NCBI RefSeq assembly: GCF_002571385.2
Contig: NW_019217977.1
Location: 46,829-110,828, forward strand
Source: Stylophora pistillata
Taxonomy: Eukaryota
Direction of reading: 5' to 3'
Length of the DNA stretch: 64,000 bases
Made by a program: the position numbers and the translations under genes. Below, piece after piece: positions 36,232-48,731 of this stretch. The notes under the pieces were generated by a model. It was given only the letters and a program-made list of their open reading frames with translations, was not told where the DNA came from and made no database searches. Each line of letters begins with the position of its first letter. Position 1 is the first letter of the stretch.

Positions 36232-37022
36232 CTAGATTGGAAGCTATTCGAACTCAAACAAAGCATCATCGACTGCGTCGAAGTACCTTAAAGAAGGATA
36301 ACTTTGAAGTATCAAAAATGGGGGACGATTGACAAGAAATTCAAACTCTCTCTTCAAATGACCTTCCATTTTGCCGCCGTGATCGCCAAATGAGAGAATG
36401 ATTTTTCCAAGTTGATTCGCTTACAACAGTTCTGCGTGGCAGAAGCGGCTCTGAAAGTATTCCTCAGTGAGCCAGACTAGTAGACAATGGTTTTTTTCGA
36501 CAGCTATTTTCAATTCTCCCCACAAATTAGCGCCAAACGGCATGTTATCTTCGTCAAGCCATGTTTTGTAATCAAGAAATTTGAGCCCGTTGCAGAAACT
36601 TTTCATTAGTTTCTTGTCTTTCGATTTGTGGAATTGGGGGCTGAATTTAGTGTATTTGATCTTTCTGATCACCAAAGGCACGACGTTTCTTCAAGGTAGT
36701 TGCGAAGCCTCTCACCGTTTTCGAGCTTGGGCCAATTTACCAGCTCATCTTCCATGTCAAAGGATTCTATTTCTTTATCACTCTTTATTCCCAGGTAGGA
36801 ACACCTGACAATTTCCATCTTCGAGGTGGCGCTTCCAATCTACTTTATGCCAACCTGTATTCCCTTTTCGAGAGCCAAGTCAAAAGTAAACTTAAGCGAT
36901 CCGGATCCAGTTTCCTCGTTAAACCCCTCAACCTTCCTGAATTCGATATTAAAGTGGTTCAGGTCTGACGTAATGCTTCCGGTTTGTACTTCAGAGAGAT
37001 CGGTATTATTTGCCATTCCCAT
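36232..37022 (-). pseudogene. TIR-domain gene copy 1, a pseudogene with frameshifts, stops and small deletions
   Basis: Colinear with 39797-40621: FTFDLALEKGIQV, HKSKDK, WLDEDNMP, YFQSRFCHAELL*. The homologous final TAG is at 36232-36234. Confidence 0.9.
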
Positions 37023-37769
37023 TGCCAAAAAATACTTTAAACGCAGTGATGAAAGTGCAAATGTAAATCGCAGGTCACAGAAGTCTGGCGATCGCGGTTC
37101 CGAACCAAAGCGAAAGTAGATGAATTATGCAAAACCTACATGGCTCCTGAACAAAGGGAAGAAAGAGAGGAGACTGGTAACTGGAAATGGCGAGATGGGC
37201 AAGGGGAAGGTACACGAAGCGCACAGTGTCATTGAACCAAATGCTATAATAAACAAATTCTTTGTTTTTCCGATATTGAGAAATTACACAACAAAATGAC
37301 TTTCATAGTGACCTACTTTTGAAATAGTGCAGCAGAGGAAGAAAATTCATGTTCCGCCATAAGCTCGATCGAGACCATCGAAGCTGTTTCTTCGAGTTTG
37401 ATTTTAAGGTAAAATATGTAAAAAAAAATTACACTCCTCTAAGCGGAGGTGTAGACCTCGTGCGCTGTCCTATCTTTTTATAGAAGTATAGGCTGTCGCG
37501 AGGTCATTTCAGTAAAAAAAAAGAGAGGCTTGATAAATAAACTGCAATTGTTATGATAAATTTTTCGGGTGATTCTAGAAATTTTTATAGCGCAGCATAT
37601 GCAGGGATCGAGTCTTTGATGAAGGCTGAAGTACCAGCGTGAATGAAACTGTCTTTTCGTTACACGGTTAAGACAAAGGTATACGGAGGTTTCGTCAACT
37701 GCCTGTACCCAGTCTAGACTTCTCAGTTATTGATGTCTGGACTCATATTAATAGAGATTTATTTTCACG

Positions 37770-37970
37770 TTAGTGGCGTTCTGGGAATCTAGCTCCCCCT
37801 ATACCAACGCAAAGGTGTTAGTGGCTATCTTATAATCTCGTATTATACCGACGCAGACGTGGTTGTTTGGTCATTGTGCTAGTGGCTATCGGAGAATCTC
37901 CCATAATTCCGACGCAAATGAAGCCGTTAAGTCCTTGTGCTAGTGGCTATCCTAGAATTTCCCTTCGCTG
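37770..37970. repeat. Degenerate minisatellite of about 59 bp upstream of TIR copy 1
   Basis: Three to four units of (GT/GC)TAGTGGCTATC...GAATCTC...CCGACGCA, the same family as 41511-41840. Confidence 0.75.
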
Positions 37971-38620
37971 CACCGAAGCTGGAGTATTCATGGGGCAAGT
38001 GATCACTTTCATTCCTCTAGTTCAACTGTATGTTATTCAATATTATTATATGGCTGTGTCTCACAAGGATTGGGAACTACTGAATTCACGAATTTCATTG
38101 GCTGAAATCAATATTGAAAGCGGTCTAGATTTTCCCATCTAGACCGGCATCTAGACCGGTCTAGAAAAAGAAGGTACAAAGAATATAAAAAAAATTGGCA
38201 TATAAGACAGCCATATAATAAACATCTTATTAACCGAGCTAGGTCGGTCTGTATGGGAGAATCTTGACCTCGGTCGCTGGTACAGACTTCACTGCGTTCG
38301 GTCTCTACTGGCGACCNNNNNNNNNNNNNNNNNNNNNNNNNNNNNNNNNNNNNNNNNNNNNNNNNNNNNNNNNNNNNNNNNNNNNNNNNNNNNNNNNNNN
38401 NNNNNNNNNNNNNNNNNNNNNNNNNNNNNNNNNNNNNNNNNNNNNNNNNNNNNNNNNNNNNNNNNNNNNNNNNNNNNNNNNNNNNNNNNNNNNNNNNNNN
38501 NNNNNNNNNNNNNNNNNNNNNNNNNNNNNNNNNNNNNNNNNNNNNNNNNNNNNNNNNNNNNNNNNNNNNNNNNNNNNNNNNNNNNNNNNNNNNNNNNNNN
38601 NNNNNNNNNNNNNNNNNNNN

Positions 38621-39015
38621 TTCAGTGCGGTTGAATTTCGCGGATATTTCTGGAGTACAAATATCGCTTGATATTTGTACTCGTCTCGCGCGTTTATTTG
38701 TACTCTACGAAGCACATTTGGATAGTAAATATATCTCATTAGAAGTTTTGTTGTGTTGTATCACTGAGTATTTTTACGAGTTGTACCGTATTTTAACGAG
38801 CCCGTTGGGTGAGTCAAAATGCAAACAACGAGTAAAAATACTCTGCGATACTACACAACAAAACGTTTAATAAAAGATTTATCATCCAACGAGGCAAATT
38901 GTTATTTCAGTGCGGGCGAATTTCGTGGATATTTGTGGAGTACAAATATCGCGTGATATTTGTACTCGTCTCGCGCATTATTTGTACTCTACGAAGCACA
39001 ATTGGATAATAAATT
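38621..39015. repeat. Palindrome-rich tandem repeat of about 285 bp; second locus at 41975-42320
   Basis: Nested inverted repeats GTACAAATATCGCGTGATATTTGTAC, TTATTATCCAA/TTGGATAATAA and GTTTTGTTGTGTAGTATC/GATACTACACAACAAAAC, repeated head-to-tail. Confidence 0.75.
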
Positions 39016-39796
39016 TACTGTACAATACTCGTAATCAGTTATTTTACCTTTGCTTAAGAGAGTAGTAACGCTATGTAACGTAATTCAATACGATGGCCGC
39101 TAAGTCATTACGTTCCTGCCTATCTTAGAATTTCACCAACGAAAAAGTAGCCGCTAAGCCATTGCATCTTATAATAACCTTGTTTACCGGCGTAAATGTA
39201 GTCGTTGCGTTACTGGCGTTAGTAGGGTCGATTGTGATACCATTCGACGCACTTAGTGGCTTCACGAAATGCTTGCGACGAAATAACTAATTTCGCTGTT
39301 ATCCTAACGCCAGTTTAAGCCCTTATCCCTCTCTTTTAATGTCATAAACACAGTTAAGGCAAAACCTGGAAGTGCCAAAGAAGCAAAGAATACCTTTTTA
39401 AGGCTAAACTCTTACATGATTGTCAACTCTTTAAGTTTACGTGCTCTTTTGTTCCGTATCGTTTCAGAGCTGTTAAATTGCCTGAGTGATATTCGAATCA
39501 CTAGCCAGCTAAATGAACGCCATCTTCAAAATATGTCTTGCTGACGAGGCATAGAAAAAAATATATAAGAAGCAAAAATATAACATCTACGTATCGTTTT
39601 AATACTGTTAAATTGACTGGGTAATATTCAAATCACTAGCCAGCTAAACGAACGCCATCTTCAAAATTGTTTTTGCTACCGAGGCATAGAAATAACACAT
39701 AAGAAGCAAAAATATAACATCTGCTGAGTGTGTTTTTCAATTCGTCTTCCAAATGCATGGTCAGGATGATTTGCTTTGAATTAAGATGTCTTCAAT

Positions 39797-40621
39797 CTAG
39801 ATCGTCAGCTTTTCGAACTCAAACAAAGCATTATCGATGCGTCGTAGCACCTCAAAGAAGGAAGACTTTGAAGTATCAAAAATGAGACGATTGGCCAGAA
39901 ATTCAAATTCTTCCTTCAAATGACCTAGGATTTTGCGGTAATCGCCAAATGGTAGAATAATTTTTCCAATTTGATTCGCATACAACAGTTCCGCCTTGCA
40001 GTAATCACTCTGAAAGTATTCCTCATTGAGCCAGACTAGGATACAATCGCATTCATCGACGGCAACTTTCAATGCTCCTTGCAAATCAGAGGCCAACGGT
40101 ATGTCATCTTTGTCAAGCCATGTTTTGTAACCAAGAAATTTGAGCCCATTACGGAAAGTTTCCATTAGCGGCTTGTGCTTCGATTTGTGGCTTAAAAAGA
40201 AGCTGAATTGGGGGCTAAATCTCGTGTATTTGATCTTTCTAGTCACCAGAGGCACGATGTTATCTTCAAGGTACTTACGAAGCCTCTCTGGGTTTCCAAC
40301 GCTGTCGTTTAATCGACGAAGCTCATAACTATTTGCCAGCTCATCCACCATGTCGAAGGAATCCATTTCGTCTTTGCATGTTATTCCCAGGTAAAGACAT
40401 CTGACAATTTCCATCGTCCAGGTGGCACTTCCACTATACTTAAAGTTATTTAAGCGAACCTCAATTCCCTTTTCGAGGGCAAAGTCAAACGTAAACACAA
40501 GCCACCAGAATCCAGTTTTTTCGTTAAGCCCGTGATTCTCCTTGATTTCGATGTTGTATTTGTTCAGACCTGACTTTATGGGTCTGATTGGTACCTTGTA
40601 GAGATCGATTTTGTCTGCCAT
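39797..40621 (-). CDS. Intact intronless 274-aa protein: unrecognised N-terminal domain of about 138 aa plus a TIR domain (TIR_2-like) with the catalytic Glu
   Basis: FFLSH (beta-A), TWLDKDDIPLASDL (beta-B and BB loop), CILVWLNEEYFQSDYCKAELLYA (beta-C/alpha-C with the conserved E) and KIILP (beta-D). Confidence 0.9.
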   Translation of the reverse strand: MADKIDLYKVPIRPIKSGLNKYNIEIKENHGLNEKTGFWWLVFTFDFALEKGIEVRLNNFKYSGSATWTMEIVRCLYLGITCKDEMDSFDMVDELANSYELRRLNDSVGNPERLRKYLEDNIVPLVTRKIKYTRFSPQFSFFLSHKSKHKPLMETFRNGLKFLGYKTWLDKDDIPLASDLQGALKVAVDECDCILVWLNEEYFQSDYCKAELLYANQIGKIILPFGDYRKILGHLKEEFEFLANRLIFDTSKSSFFEVLRRIDNALFEFEKLTI

Positions 40622-41250
40622 TGCCGAACAAATACTTTAAACTCAGTAGTGGAGGTGTATGCGTAAATCGCAGTTCACTGTACCCAAGCGGAAGTAGGTC
40701 ACCGCATGGATCCTGAACAAAGACAAGCAAGAGAGAAGACTGGAAACTGGAAATGGTGGGAAGGGCATATCATGACATGGGGTTAGTAGGAGCTACACGA
40801 AGTGCACGGTATTATAGAACGAGGTGCTATGACAAACAATTTGTTTGTTTTTCCGATATTGAGAAAGACACAACAAAATGACTTTCATAGTCACCTACGA
40901 TTGAAATTGTGCAGCAGAGGAAAAAAAATCCATGCTCCACCATAAGCTCGATTGAGACCATCGAAGCTTTGTTTCTTCAAGTTTGATTTTAAGATAAAAT
41001 CAGTGTATAAAAAACACAGTACTCTCTTGTAAACGGGGTTGTATACCTCGTGCACTGTCCCATCTTTTTACAGAAGCATAGGCTGTCGCGAGGTCATTTC
41101 AGTCATTCAAAAAAACCAAAAGCTTAAAAATAAAAGGCTTCATAAATGAACTGCAAGTGTTGTGATAAATTTTTTGGGTGATTCTAGAAATGTTTATAGT
41201 GCAGCATATGCAGGGATCGAGTCTTTGATGAAGGCTAAAGTACCAGCTTA

Positions 41251-41253
<3 letters not shown>

Positions 41254-41304
<51 letters not shown>
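41254..41304. repeat. (TAA)n microsatellite inserted in the TIR copy 2 upstream region
   Basis: About 16 TAA units flanked by a duplicated CCAGCTT. It is absent from the paralogous position at about 37635. Confidence 0.85.
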
Positions 41305-41305
<1 letters not shown>

Positions 41306-41510
41306 CCAGCTTGAATGAAACTGTCTTTTAGTTACACGGTTAAGACAACGGTATCCGGAGCAATTTCGTCAACCGCCTGCACCCAGTCTAGACTTCTCAG
41401 TTATTGATGTCTAGACTCATATTAATAGAGATTTATATTCACGTACTTTAGTGGATTTCTGAGAATCTAGCTCCCTTTATACCTACGCAAAGGTAGCCAT
41501 AAGTCATAGT

Positions 41511-41840
41511 GTTAGTGGCTATCTTAGAATCTCGTTATTTACCGACGCAAACGTGGCCGTTTAGTCATTATGCTAGTGGCTATCAGAGAATCTCCCATAA
41601 TTCTGACGGAAATGGAGCCGTTAGTCATTGTGTTAGTGGCTATCTGAGAATCTCCCATAATACCGACGCAAATGAAGCCGTTAGTCATTATGCTAGTCGG
41701 CTATCAGAGAATCTCCCATAATTCTGACACAAATGAAGCCGTTAGTCATTGTGTTAGTGGCTATCTGAGTATCTCCCATAATACCGACGCAAATGAAGCC
41801 GTTAATTTATTGCGTTACTGGCTATTCTAGAATGTCCCTT
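41511..41840. repeat. Minisatellite of about 59-60 bp, 5-6 units, alternating A/B variants
   Basis: Units alternate between TATGCTAGTGGCTATCAGAGAATCTCCCATAATTCTGAC and TGTGTTAGTGGCTATCTGAGAATCTCCCATAATACCGAC. Confidence 0.9.
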
Positions 41841-42194
41841 CAGTCGGCACCGATGCTGGAGTATTCATGGGGCAAGTGATCACTTTCATTCTAGTTCAAC
41901 TGTATTTTATTCAATAATCAAGATAGTATGTATCTTATCGCCGTATTTTGACTGGCCCCTGGGGCCAGTCAAAATATACAAACAACGAGTAAAAATACTC
42001 AGCGATACTACACAACAAAACGTTTAATAAGAGATTTATTATCCAACGAGCCAAATTGTTATTTCAGTGCGGTTGAATTTCGTGGATATTTCTGGCGTAC
42101 AAATATCGCGTGATATTTGTACTCGTCTCGCGCGTTATTTGTACTGTACTAAGCACATTTGGATAATACATATATCTTATTAGACGTTTTGTTG

Positions 42195-42234
<40 letters not shown>

Positions 42235-42602
42235 TAACGAGCCCGTAAGGAGAGTCCAAATGCAAACAATGAGTAAAAATACTCAGCGACACTACACAAC
42301 AAAACGTTTAATAGGAGCTCAAANNNNNNNNNNNNNNNNNNNNNTCTTACATGATTGTCAACTCTTCCAGTTTACGTGCTGTTTTGTTCCGTATCGTTTC
42401 AGAGCTGTTAAAATGCCTGAGTGATATTCAAATCACTAGCCGGCTAAATGGATGCCATCTTTAAATTATGTTTTGCAGACGAGGCATAGAAATAACAAAT
42501 ATAAGAAGCAAAAATATAATATCTGCTGACTGTTTCTTAATTCCTCTTTCAAATACATAGGCTACATGGTATTTACTTTCAAAAATTAAGATTGTCTACA
42601 TT

Positions 42603-43433
42603 CTAGATTGCAAGCTTTTCGAACTCAAACAAAGCACTATCGATGCGTCGTAGCACCTCAAAGAAGGTCGACTTTGAAGTATCTTAAATGAGACGATTGG
42701 CCAGAAATTCAAATTCTCCCTTCAAATGACCTTGGATTTTGCCGTAATCGCCAAATGGGAGAATGATTTTTCCAAGTTTTTTCGCATACAACAGTTCCGC
42801 CTTGCAGTAATCGCTTTGAAAGTATTCCTCATTGAGCCAGACTAGTAAACAATCGCATTCTTCGATGGCAACTTTCAATGCTCCTTGCAATTCAGTGACC
42901 ATCGGCATGTCTTCTTTGTCAAGCCATGTTCTATAACCAAGAAATTTGAGCCCATTGCGGAAAGTTTCCATTAGCGCCTTGTCCTTCGATTTGTGGCTTA
43001 AAAAGAAGCTGAATTGGGGGCTGAATTTAGTGTATTTGATCTTTCTAATCACCAGAGGCACGATGTTATCTTCAAGGTACTTGCGAAGCCTCTCATTATT
43101 TCCGACTTGGTCGTTTATTCGTAGAAACTCGGGCCTATTTCCAAGCTCTTCGTCCATGTCGAAGGAATCCATTTTTTTCTCGTCTGTTATTCCCAGGTAA
43201 AAACATTTAATAATTTCCATTGTCCAGGTGGGTCTACCAATACCAAAATATTTGAAGTTCGTTAAGCGAACCTCGATTCCCTTTTCGAGAGCTAAGTCAA
43301 ACGTAAAAACACGCAACCAGAATGTAGTTCTCCGGTTGGGCCCCTTGTTCTCCTTGATTTCGATGTTGTATTTGTTCAGATCTGACTTAATGTATCTTGT
43401 ATTGTACGTGGAGAGGTCGATTTTGCCTGCCAT
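42603..43433 (-). CDS. TIR-domain gene copy 3; a premature in-frame TAA at 42684-42686 removes the last 27 residues (249-aa product or young pseudogene)
   Basis: ATG at 43433 (MAGKIDL). TTT in copy 2 is TAA here. The frame continues DTSKSTFFEVLRRIDSALFEFEKLAI to the homologous TAG at 42603. Confidence 0.85.
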
Positions 43434-45592: not shown

Positions 45593-48417
45593 TTACTCAT
45601 TAGGCATTTTAGTATTGCAGTTTCCATGATAAACATGAATTGGCCCAGAACAGTTGTGATATAAATTAAACACTTTTTCATATCCATGATTCCTCCACCA
45701 TGTACAAAGCTGACGATTCCAAGAACAGGGAAGGACATGGAAAAACTCAGGATAATCTAAGTTGAGCAATGAGTAAAAATCTTGATCTCCAAGATGCCCT
45801 TGGAAGGTATACTTGGTTGCTATCTCCTTCACTACATTGTTATTGAGAAGCTGGTTATACCTCTTTGAGTCACGCATCTTTTGTAAGTTTATTAACATGA
45901 CACCACTGTTAAAACCTGTTGCCCCATCTGGTGGTGGTTCTCCAGCTTTTGCACCAGGATGTCCATCACGATACATGTGCAGAATGTGTCTGTAAACTGG
46001 CTGCTGCTCTCTTGCAAGGCCAAAAATTGTGGTGGCTTTAAAATTATCAAATATTGCAAACAGTTGCTTGATGTCTGTCTGGAAAAACAAGTCAGAGTCC
46101 AGTGATATGATGTGTTTCATGGTCTGCGGCAGCACTTGATGTATGGCAGTGGATACAAAGAATAAGGGGTGACTGAAGTAAGAACGAGAGCCAGTACTGA
46201 ACAGATTCTGTGAAAGAAATTAAGAAGTTATCAGTAATTCCTAATTCCCATTACAATTGAGGTTTTATACTCTTAAGTTTTCCATAATAAAATATTGTGA
46301 GTTAGAATTTGACTCTGCCAGCCTCACCCGTACAATGCCAAGGAAAATCAAAACGAAAGCTGACAAGTGTAGGACCAAACAGATTGACACAAGCGAGTCT
46401 GGAAACAGATGTCAAGCCCTGCACTTATATGGCTTTGTTTAAAAAACTTAAAGTAAAACAGAAATGAGGAAAAAGGTTAGAAAAGTTTTTGTTGCAGAAT
46501 CTTTTTTGTGGTTGTCCTGTTCATGACATCTCTTACCTCCTACATGAATTTTAGGTTAAAACAAAATTTTCCAAATTTTAAACTCACCATGGTCATATGA
46601 TGAAATGTGTATTGACTGAGTTTAGCCTAGCTGCACAGGAAAATATTGGGCTCTCAATCAGCAGGGCTGTGGTCTAGTAGCGTCCGGTTGCCCCTGGAGC
46701 TTTANNNNNNNNNNNNNNNNNNNNNNNNNNNNNNNNNNNNNNNNNNNNNNNNNNNNNNNNNNNNNNNNNNNNNNNNNNNNNNNNNNNNNNNNNNNNNNNN
46801 NNNNNNNNNNNNNNNNNNNNNNNNNNNNNNNNNNNNNNNNNNNNNNNNNNNNNNNNNNNNNNNNNNNNNNNNNNNNNNNNNNNNNNNNNNNNNNNNNNNN
46901 NNNNNNNNNNNNNNNNNNNNNNNNNNNNNNNNNNNNNNNTAAGATATATATTAAATACAGGTAAATTAATACATATTCAAGTGCATGGTATTCTCTTTGA
47001 AATCTCTGCAGAATGATTATAAAATACAGTTTTACTTATGATCATCACCCTCAGTTTTATATTTCTAATTTAACATGTTTTGTGTCAGAGTTGTGGGTCA
47101 GGCCCCAGTTGTTCGAAGCATGGATAACACTATCGACTGGATAAATCTCCATCTGCTGGATAGCGCAGTACGTTTTGGCAACACTTATCTGCTGGATAGC
47201 GATTTATCCATTGGATAGCGTTATGTACTCCTTGAACAACAGGGCCCAGGTGTAACCTTAACCCTTTGACCCTTAAGAGTGACTGGAATCTAGTTTTTCC
47301 TTACAGTATCACCCCTGAATCACTCATAAAGGGATCAGGAGAATAAAGGAAATGATCACCTTCTGAAAAACCTATTGATTTATAATCAAATTCTCCTTGT
47401 CAGTAGCTCAGAAAATATCTAGAGAACAGTATGGAGTATATGCATACATACCTGAATTTCTTTGGTGATTGGTTTGACCTTACTAGATACATTGTCAACA
47501 TCATAATAAGTTACACTCAGGCCCTGGTTACACACTTTACCAGCCTGACTGAATGTATCCTCGCATGTAAGTTTTCCAACTTTGTCAGTTATTATATGAA
47601 AAGTCAAATTTATGCTGGAGTGTTCACAGATGGACAACACACACCGTTTGAACCGTTTAGCTAAGGAGCTTGCCTGGGAAACTTTAGCAAGAATCATCAA
47701 AATGTTGTTCTCGTTTTGTTGAGAAACAATGGGAGTTGCTACTTTCTTTTCACTCTTTTTCTTCCCACCATTTTTGTTTCCATTGAAATTGTCACTATGG
47801 TTTTCCTTGGAAACGTTTTCAGGCTCTTTTTGGTCAGGAACAAGAGACTTCTCCTCCAACAATGTTGTCTTCTTGATGAGTTCTTCATCGTGATAACTCA
47901 CTTCGCTCTCGAACGGTGAGTGTTGAGCTTTATTGTCATGTTGCAGATCTTTCTTCAGTCCTTTATTTTGCAATTTCCTGTGATCTAAGTCATTTTCAGC
48001 TTTCTCGATTTCTTCCTCTTTCAATCTTATTTTATTTTCTGCCTCAGATATCACTTTGCTGTCGTCTTCACCGCCTCCTTTGATCTTTTTCGTTAAATTA
48101 TCTTCTTTCTTTTTGAGTTTACTTCGATTAAAATCCACCATAGAGGGTGTATTTCTGTTATCGTTCATCGAAGGTAAACTTTGCTGCAGTTTTTTCGCGT
48201 TTTCACGCTGTACTTGATTCTGCTTCCAACCAATATTCTTAGGAACATGTTGGACTAAACTTCCTGCGACAAGATTAAGTTCCTGCGCATTTTGCTGCTC
48301 TGGAACTGAAGAGTAGAGAAATCTGCTAGCGATAACTAGAAGCAAAAGGAGTCCTATCACCAAAATTCGAGTAGGATGCCTCATACAATATCGAAATAAA
48401 CTTGCTCCTACCGCCAT
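45593..48417 (-). CDS. XXYLT1: Xyloside xylosyltransferase 1 (GT8 family, type II membrane protein), 2 exons, 526 aa
   Basis: Exons 47452-48417 and 45593-46207 (phase 0). N-terminal TM helix, DSD (DxD) motif, AREQQPVYRH, FNSGVML, GHLGDQDFY, WNRQLCTWW and HGNCNT. Confidence 0.92.
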
Positions 48418-48731
48418 GTTGTTTTCACCACATAATTATTTTTACCTCTTCAGGGGTAGGCACTGTTATGATGTCAAACCCAAAAGATGATGAATAAGAA
48501 TCATTACAGAAACAGAACTGTCTGAATTTAAATATAGAAACGAAGTTTTAAGCTTCGACTTACCTTACAGGATTCAATAAGCTCGCAATAGCAAATCAAA
48601 ATTAAAATGATATATATTTCCAAATGAGTAATTTTGCGTTTTCGTCATTTTACTCTACCTCTCCCCACTTAGAAGTATTTGCAACAGAGCAGTCGCACGA
48701 GGGTGGTCAGCGGATGAGAAGCAGAATCAAA
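48418..48731. promoter_or_regulatory. Probable bidirectional promoter for XXYLT1 and MRPS22
   Basis: The divergent ATGs are 314 bp apart. A YY1-like AAAATGGCGGC overlaps the MRPS22 start. Confidence 0.6.

Follow-up and report, generated by a model that had tools for sequence, protein, structure and literature searches.

A single-exon coral gene joins an N-terminal domain without recognised relatives to a TIR domain resembling bacterial NAD-cleaving TIRs

Background

TIR enzymes that either produce nucleotide signals or deplete nicotinamide adenine dinucleotide (NAD+) hold a central place in the immunity of bacteria and plants, and a glutamate of the TIR domain is catalytic in NAD-cleaving members such as SARM1, the plant TNLs, and bacterial ThsB. 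Some plant TIRs have been reported to act on RNA or DNA as 2',3'-cyclic nucleotide monophosphate (2',3'-cNMP) synthetases or as nucleases. SARM1 is, to our knowledge, the only established TIR enzyme in animals. Here we analyze a 64,000-nucleotide stretch of the coral Stylophora pistillata genome (assembly GCF_002571385.2, contig NW_019217977.1, positions 46,829 to 110,828 of the forward strand), which we call the window and in whose coordinates all positions are given. Its minus strand carries three homologous tandem units with copies 1 to 3 of a TIR gene, numbered by increasing coordinate. Copy 2 is a complete, expressed, single-exon gene, and its TIR domain may be an enzyme.

Anthozoan TIR-only genes are an acknowledged class without characterised function, and this family would be counted among them. 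TIR is its sole database-recognised domain, and its homologues are anthozoan. It shares with the class a TIR of the TIR_2 type, whose bacterial likeness had been remarked on earlier in novel cnidarian genes, and a copy number that varies by species. The published surveys are domain counts, however, and as far as we found none of them singles out this family, its 135-residue N-terminal domain (N domain), its single exon, or its spread into octocorals. We likewise found no description elsewhere of a single orthologous family spanning hexacorals and octocorals, nor of an equally conserved N domain without relatives, a single-exon structure, and a TIR that ranks beside bacterial NADases. A 2026 TIR atlas preprint includes cnidarian clades among the unstudied eukaryotic TIR clades and describes TirC of Dictyostelium as a potent NADase (PMC13142454).

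Copy 2 is a complete and expressed gene

The features of copy 2 are the following.

39797..40621, minus strand: intact single-exon coding sequence of 274 amino acids (open reading frame, Pfam TIR_2 match, AlphaFold2 model, 150 full-length homologues)
40621-40217, minus strand: N domain, residues 1-135
about 40210-39800, minus strand: TIR_2 domain (Pfam), residues about 138-274
39989..39991, minus strand: codon of Glu211 within the motif SDYCKAEL (translation; invariant alignment column; aligned with the glutamate of Cat1, BtTir, and AbTir)
about 38990..40815, minus strand: transcribed span (RNA colinear with the genome; both ends approximate, the 3' end entering a repeat)

Of the sequence words sampled from 39700-40800, about three quarters are present in twelve poly-A RNA runs, which come from at least three studies; the runs that contain the gene carry the label coral metagenome. 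Contigs assembled from poly-A RNA tile 38984-40815 with no joint within copy 2, which leaves a 3' untranslated region (UTR) of about 0.8 kb and a 5' UTR of about 0.1-0.2 kb. Individual reads from four runs were placed on the gap-free interval 38621-42323 around copy 2 only. In the stranded raw reads the first mate lies nearly always on the plus strand, so the RNA corresponds to the minus strand. Depth climbs toward the 3' end of the gene, the pattern expected of poly-A libraries. The spacer upstream of the gene (41101-41968) acts as an internal silent control, and its depth of zero in all four runs speaks against DNA carry-over. Five stranded read molecules terminate at window position 39766, about 30 nt past the stop codon; these ends may mark a minor proximal poly-A site beside the 0.8-kb 3' UTR.

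The open frame reaches just five codons above the ATG (279 versus 274 codons), and the homologues begin at the same methionine. Because the RNA is colinear and free of joints and the frame closes five codons before the ATG, no further coding exon can join. Together with the shared start methionine, these observations exclude the possibility that the open reading frame is the last exon of a larger receptor. An initial annotation, made from the sequence alone, had called the genes intronless and had listed expression among the points to check; the RNA carries no splice joints, and the poly-A data establish transcription for at least copy 2.

Within the copy 2 protein Pfam recognises TIR_2 and detects no leucine-rich repeat (LRR), death, Ig, or SAM domain. 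No transmembrane segment is predicted, the highest 19-residue hydropathy being 1.14, and a protein without such a hydrophobic segment is expected to be cytosolic. It thus lacks the LRR or Ig ectodomain with a transmembrane segment, the death domain, and the ARM and SAM domains that mark the TLR, IL-1R-like, MyD88, and SARM1 architectures; the initial annotation had likewise set these architectures aside.

The TIR domain and its catalytic-position glutamate

The predicted structure has the flavodoxin-like alpha/beta fold of TIR domains. Residues 138-272 of the AlphaFold2 model match solved TIR domains in Foldseek with a probability of 1.00 and template modelling (TM) scores up to 0.80, and the top match is AbTir in complex with the NAD analogue 3AD (E = 8e-6, TM score 0.79, root-mean-square deviation (rmsd) 2.6 Å). 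VIA-align gives a best Z score of 14.1 for the TIR, with an rmsd of 2.3 Å over 122 residues. At the sequence level, Pfam TIR_2 (PF13676, cut-off 28 bits) scores copy 2 at 53 bits, copy 3 at 55.8 bits, and the copy 1 fragment at 36.4 bits. On copy 2, PF01582, the canonical model for animal TIRs, scores 14 bits and misses its threshold of 21 bits.

A profile of the family run against Protein Data Bank (PDB) sequences ranks Cat1 (2.4e-10), BtTir (2.7e-7), AbTir (5e-7), and BtpA (1.6e-3) ahead of the animal signaling TIRs TLR1 (0.018) and SIGIRR (0.04). By sequence the TIR is closest to the bacterial NADase TIRs Cat1, BtTir, and AbTir, and the likeness to prokaryotic NAD-cleaving TIRs that the initial annotation had proposed is upheld at this level. 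That annotation had also pointed to an S-x-x-C-x-x-E motif. The motif is present as SDYCKAEL at 40009-39986 (SDYCKAELL at 40009-39983) on the minus strand, with the Glu211 codon at 39991-39989. Its counterparts in the alignment are SDWCWDEL in Cat1 and W...E in BtTir and AbTir, so that Glu211 falls on their catalytic glutamate. Glu211 is invariant in 51 family sequences, and position 207 is tyrosine, or tryptophan in some members. The glutamate and the aromatic residue four positions earlier are kept also in two divergent members, P0128 and P0136. This pair of residues is a feature of NAD+-cleaving TIRs that is necessary but insufficient for activity. As a hint of enzymatic function the glutamate was overstated at first: its position is aligned and invariant, but the same residue occurs in the non-enzymatic TIRs of TLR1/2/6/10 (PMC7075850).

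A back-translated pattern scan of 185,579 genomes, which is insensitive to distant relatives, found no prokaryotic relatives. A word search with the TIR alone, insensitive in the same way, returned only fragments of the family. Recent transfer from bacteria has left no sign in either search; a transfer in the distant past could have escaped both.

The N-terminal domain

AlphaFold2 run on the family alignment yields a confident two-domain model with a predicted local distance difference test (pLDDT) score of 85 and a predicted TM score of 0.82. The N domain is predicted to form a five-strand beta-meander (residues 25-91) followed by two helices (94-131), with the TIR at 140-273. When folded alone, it retains this topology at a pLDDT of 78.

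The initial annotation had called this domain unknown, and that description survives searches by both sequence profile and structure. Residues 1-135 match no family in Pfam or NCBIfam, and neither PDB sequence profiles nor the ESM Atlas give a match. Among 48,161 chains compared with VIA-align the best score is Z = 5.6 (FrpD), under the tool's stated background of Z 7-8. Foldseek finds nothing better than E = 0.3 in the PDB, and the BFVD viral structure library yields nothing better than E = 0.2. A UBC/RWD-like fold was considered and rejected, as the E2, RWD, and UEV chains reach just Z 3.8-4.6, which is noise level.

A profile built from eleven N domains was also run on 1.84 billion representative proteins. 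It returned 17 proteins: 14 are family members or their fragments, two are the divergent members P0128 and P0136, which have the same layout of N domain plus TIR_2, and one is a spurious low-complexity repeat protein. In this search the N domain therefore appears only in fusion with this TIR.

Distribution and conservation across corals

A word-based search recovered 150 proteins, nearly all of 260-300 amino acids, with 95-100% query coverage and 51-81% identity. The named sources include the stony coral Montipora capricornis and the octocorals Xenia sp. and Dendronephthya gigantea. Family genes are likewise uninterrupted open reading frames in Xenia, Dendronephthya, and six other coral assemblies. 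Judged from the distribution of its sequences, the family is anthozoan-specific and at least as old as the split between hexacorals and octocorals.

Every other assembly examined holds an intact copy. Xenia has two intact tandem copies, one coral assembly has two intact copies arranged head-to-head, in two others a TIR fragment follows an intact gene, and the remaining loci examined have one intact copy each. Low-copy birth-and-death is a fair description of the family.

Across 51 members from hexacorals and octocorals, mean pairwise identity is 61.7% for the N domain (residues 19-134) versus 64.3% for the TIR (137-274). Invariant residues, many of them polar, occur in the N half (G31, G37, W39, F45, N59, E71, C75, S88, D90, E112, Y117, and K129), and others in the TIR half (W197 and E211). 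The most divergent full-length member (39% identity; L014:9932-10711) lies, in an animal assembly, about 4.6 kb downstream of exons encoding caspase (Peptidase_C14) and Death domains.

Copies 3 and 1 and the divergence of the local paralogues

The two other members of the array are no longer intact, which agrees with an early description of one intact, one truncated, and one frameshifted reading frame (copies 2, 3, and 1, respectively).

42603..43433, minus strand: copy 3, a stopped paralogue with its ATG at 43433 and its original stop near 42603, 77% identical in protein sequence to copy 2
36232..37016, minus strand: copy 1, an old pseudogene with three frameshifts, two stops, and in-frame deletions

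Compared with copy 2, copy 3 carries a single in-frame insertion of 6 nt and, at 42684-42686, a TAA. This stop is codon 250 of its own frame and, by cutting off 26 C-terminal residues, costs the protein the final TIR helix; the frame beyond it is still open and conserved. A counterpart of copy 3 on a scaffold from another coral metagenome sample (L015/P0003) is intact, is 97.8% identical in DNA sequence, and has TAC (Tyr) at the position of the stop. The stop probably arose, therefore, by a single TAC-to-TAA change. The truncation had originally been read by comparison with copy 2 as TTT-to-TAA; the stop is real, but this origin probably is not. Between copy 3 and L015/P0003 the ratio of nonsynonymous to synonymous differences (pN/pS) is 0.29, which together with the intact counterpart indicates that copy 3 was a constrained gene until very recently. 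Copy 3 is a recently inactivated or null-allele copy, and its single-base stop may still be segregating or be lineage-specific. The intact counterpart also hints at presence/absence (null-allele) variation of this copy.

Copy 1 is an old pseudogene. Its frameshifts lie near 36688 (-1), 36325 (+2), and 36274 (+1), and its stops at 36421-36423 and 36244-36246. The in-frame deletions include one of 15 nt that removes SFFLS, the first TIR strand. No close intact counterpart of copy 1 was found among the retrieved proteins.

Copies 2 and 3 differ more in their N halves (71% protein identity) than in their TIR halves (84%). The number of synonymous substitutions per site (dS) is 0.25 overall, with 0.41 for the N half versus 0.12 for the TIR half, and the ratio of nonsynonymous to synonymous rates (dN/dS) is 0.46 and 0.56, respectively. 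Because dS in the N half rises along with dN, and because dN/dS is alike in the two halves, homogenisation of the 3' half, or a mosaic history, accounts for this pattern better than diversifying selection does. Quick trees of the separate domains give the copy 3 lineage an N-domain branch of 0.45 versus about 0.07 for its TIR, and some acceleration of the N domain in this lineage is possible. In a quick tree of the family, copy 2, copy 3, and P0003 adjoin the trio of a second species, which shows a parallel duplication. The N domain had been labeled variable in the initial annotation. That holds between the local copies but not across the family, where the two domains are nearly equally conserved. 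Diversifying selection on a variable N domain is rejected at the family level by this equal conservation, and between the paralogues the joint rise of dS and dN speaks against it.

Layout of the tandem array

A six-frame search of the whole 398-Mb assembly finds three copies of the family, all of them here, and one unrelated TIR gene. The start-to-start spacing of the units is about 3.56-3.60 kb and about 2.80-2.81 kb. These lengths are approximate because the sizes of the assembly gaps are estimates and because about 0.4 kb may be hidden or deleted in unit 3. A three-way DNA alignment of about 1 kb has a mean column identity of 85%, and the likeness extends into the 5' and 3' flanks. Both the spacing and the alignment bear out the earlier proposal of three tandem units with homologous flanks. 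The gaps and repeats of the array are as follows.

38317..38620, no strand: assembly gap 1, in the spacer between copies 1 and 2 and outside all reading frames
42324..42344, no strand: assembly gap 2, about 260 nt downstream of the original stop of copy 3, in its former 3' flank
41471..41838, no strand: tandem repeat of a 60/61-nt unit, 6 copies, 0.85-1.2 kb upstream of copy 2 and part of the duplicated unit
37815-37963, no strand: shorter counterpart of this repeat, 2.4 copies, upstream of copy 1

The copy 2 transcript ends about 370 nt short of gap 1, which in turn lies about 1.3 kb upstream of copy 1. Since both runs of N are clear of all three reading frames, continuation of a frame across a gap is not an issue for any copy, and the runs may conceal up to a few hundred bases of spacer. 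By the repeat families D5, D7, and D9, the blocks on either side of gap 2 follow the order of unit 2, but about 0.4 kb of unit 2 is unseen in unit 3; it may be hidden in the gap or may have been deleted.

The mapped RNA reads show no coverage over the tandem repeat at 41471-41838. Repeat blocks at 38621-38992 and 41969-42323 border the two gaps. Their RNA depth is very high, running into the hundreds or thousands, and the RNA there shows many loose ends as well as opposite-strand and go-back joints. These blocks are probably a short transposable or foldback element, highly expressed and present in each duplicated unit. The neighboring open reading frames at 45593-46135 (minus strand) and 48624-49097 (plus strand) match glycosyltransferase family 8 and mitochondrial ribosomal protein S22, respectively, which are ordinary animal genes with no evident functional tie to the TIR cluster.

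Proposed function and alternatives

We suggest, with the arguments on either side close to balanced, that the copy 2 TIR is an NAD(P)+-consuming enzyme that depends on self-association, is gated by the N domain, and acts in an immune or stress response. The TIR would be a glycohydrolase or cyclase that makes an ADP-ribose (ADPR)-type product from NAD(P)+, and it would become active upon self-association. A homodimer prediction for the protein scored 0.00, a value that by the tool's own account is neither for nor against binding. The N domain, whose role we infer entirely, could be a sensor, a regulator, or an assembly module that gates the TIR. If so, the whole protein would be a compact innate-immune or stress sensor-effector.

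A more far-reaching version, which we offer as a tentative possibility, is that the family constitutes a second lineage of enzymatic TIRs in animals beside SARM1. The N domain, with its novel fold, would sense a cue of infection or stress and free a bacterial-type TIR, which could then deplete NAD+ or make ADPR or a cyclic ADPR (cADPR)-isomer second messenger. The local gain and loss of copies might in this case reflect an arms race. ADPR-gated TRPM2-type channels are known in cnidarians and are speculative recipients of the product.

The enzymatic proposal has to contend with several observations, some of which would suit a different function. Structural ranking with VIA-align mixes scaffold and enzymatic TIRs, such that Hydra TRR-2 (Z = 14.1) and MyD88 (13.2) stand on either side of SARM1 (13.7), and IL-18Rbeta and TIRAP likewise match the fold as well as enzymatic TIRs do. 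The BB-loop motif D...P.G, with the proline typical of signaling TIRs, is conserved in the family. The glutamate itself is found in >70% of TIRs; in the TLR1/2/6/10 group, for which no enzymatic activity is known, the share is >90% (PMC7075850). The bacterial defence families are matched weakly, with 11.6-19 bits for the PADLOC ThsB models and 22.9 bits for the NCBIfam model of Thoeris type III ThcB4 against a cut-off of 220. All but the last of these points are compatible with a non-enzymatic scaffold or adaptor that joins or damps TLR, IL-1R-like, or MyD88 signaling through TIR-TIR contacts, with the N domain as its docking module, and the literature has suggested scaffold roles for expanded anthozoan TIR-only genes (PMC5094078). 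We nevertheless regard a scaffold as somewhat unlikely. The sequence profile scores five to eight orders of magnitude better on bacterial NADase TIRs than on any animal signaling TIR, PF01582 fails to reach its threshold, and the glutamate, like an aromatic residue four positions ahead of it, is kept without exception, also in the most divergent members P0128 and P0136.

The same glutamate and the same fold would also serve an enzyme with another substrate or output, in which NAD depletion is not primary: a 2',3'-cNMP synthetase or a nuclease on RNA or DNA, or an enzyme of base exchange or ADP-ribosyl transfer. Nucleoside 2-deoxyribosyltransferase folds are among the structural neighbors (Z 10-11.5), and according to the TIR atlas preprint phylogenetic similarity does not predict product chemistry (PMC13142454). 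No sequence feature specifically indicates nucleic-acid binding, however, and the nearest relatives by sequence are NAD-cleaving enzymes, so that we consider this alternative improbable. It is more improbable still, to the point of being hard to credit, that the cluster is a decaying remnant in which copy 2 is transcribed yet dispensable and heading for loss. Two of the three copies are broken and dN/dS between the local copies is about 0.5, but a comparison between a live gene and pseudogenes should give an intermediate ratio. Copy 2 is expressed, the protein is conserved over its full length on both sides of the hexacoral-octocoral split, each of its domains keeps invariant residues, and intact copies are found in every other assembly examined.

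The family that includes copy 2 is a candidate that lends itself well to testing: its gene is short, has no introns, and is expressed, the glutamate at the catalytic position is invariant, and the partner domain is found nowhere else. If the TIR is enzymatic, then TIR-based nucleotide signaling extends to early-branching animals and coral immunology gains a defined effector. If it is a scaffold, the family still defines a new regulatory domain of cnidarian TLR-type signaling. The intact or null state of copy 3 across samples may in addition serve as a marker of presence/absence variation in coral immune genes.

Comparison with known systems

Both by sequence and in Foldseek, the TIR half is matched best by the bacterial NADase TIR proteins AbTir, BtTir, BtpA (TcpB), and PdTIR and the CRISPR-associated Cat1, with which both the FxSH...DK start and the (W/Y)xxxE motif align. 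Their identity to the coral TIR is 18-22%, however. The N-terminal partner also differs, being a coiled coil in AbTir, a CARF domain in Cat1, and a novel domain in the coral family. The coral gene, unlike those of the bacterial NADases, resides in an animal genome and has a poly-A mRNA.

SARM1 is an animal TIR protein with the catalytic-position glutamate, and its TIR superimposes on that of copy 2 with an rmsd of 2.7 Å over 129 residues (Z = 13.7). The coral family differs in having no ARM, SAM, or octamer-forming module, in being less like SARM1 than like bacterial TIRs in sequence, and in its restriction to anthozoans. A second uninterrupted open reading frame in the same genome (L005:1231-3108; G000:C17, about 404 kb) encodes 625 amino acids with armadillo/HEAT repeats followed by a strong TIR_2 match (84 bits). 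Its ARM-TIR layout recalls SARM1, and no SAM domains were detected in it.

Thoeris ThsB and the plant TIR-only proteins of the RBA1 type resemble the coral protein in being compact TIR effectors without a receptor ectodomain, and a similar signal-producing logic is conceivable. The ThsB and ThcB4 scores are far under those of members, those proteins have no counterpart of the extra N domain, and the genes beside the three copies are unrelated animal genes with no ThsA-like or EDS1-like partner among them. Dictyostelium TirBCD is, like the coral family, a eukaryotic TIR of bacterial affinity without a known regulatory domain, and it offers a precedent for potent, self-assembling NADases that are tolerated by their host (PMC13142454). 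TirBCD is a recent transfer related to TIR-STING, whereas for the coral family, which is old, we found no close relative among bacteria.

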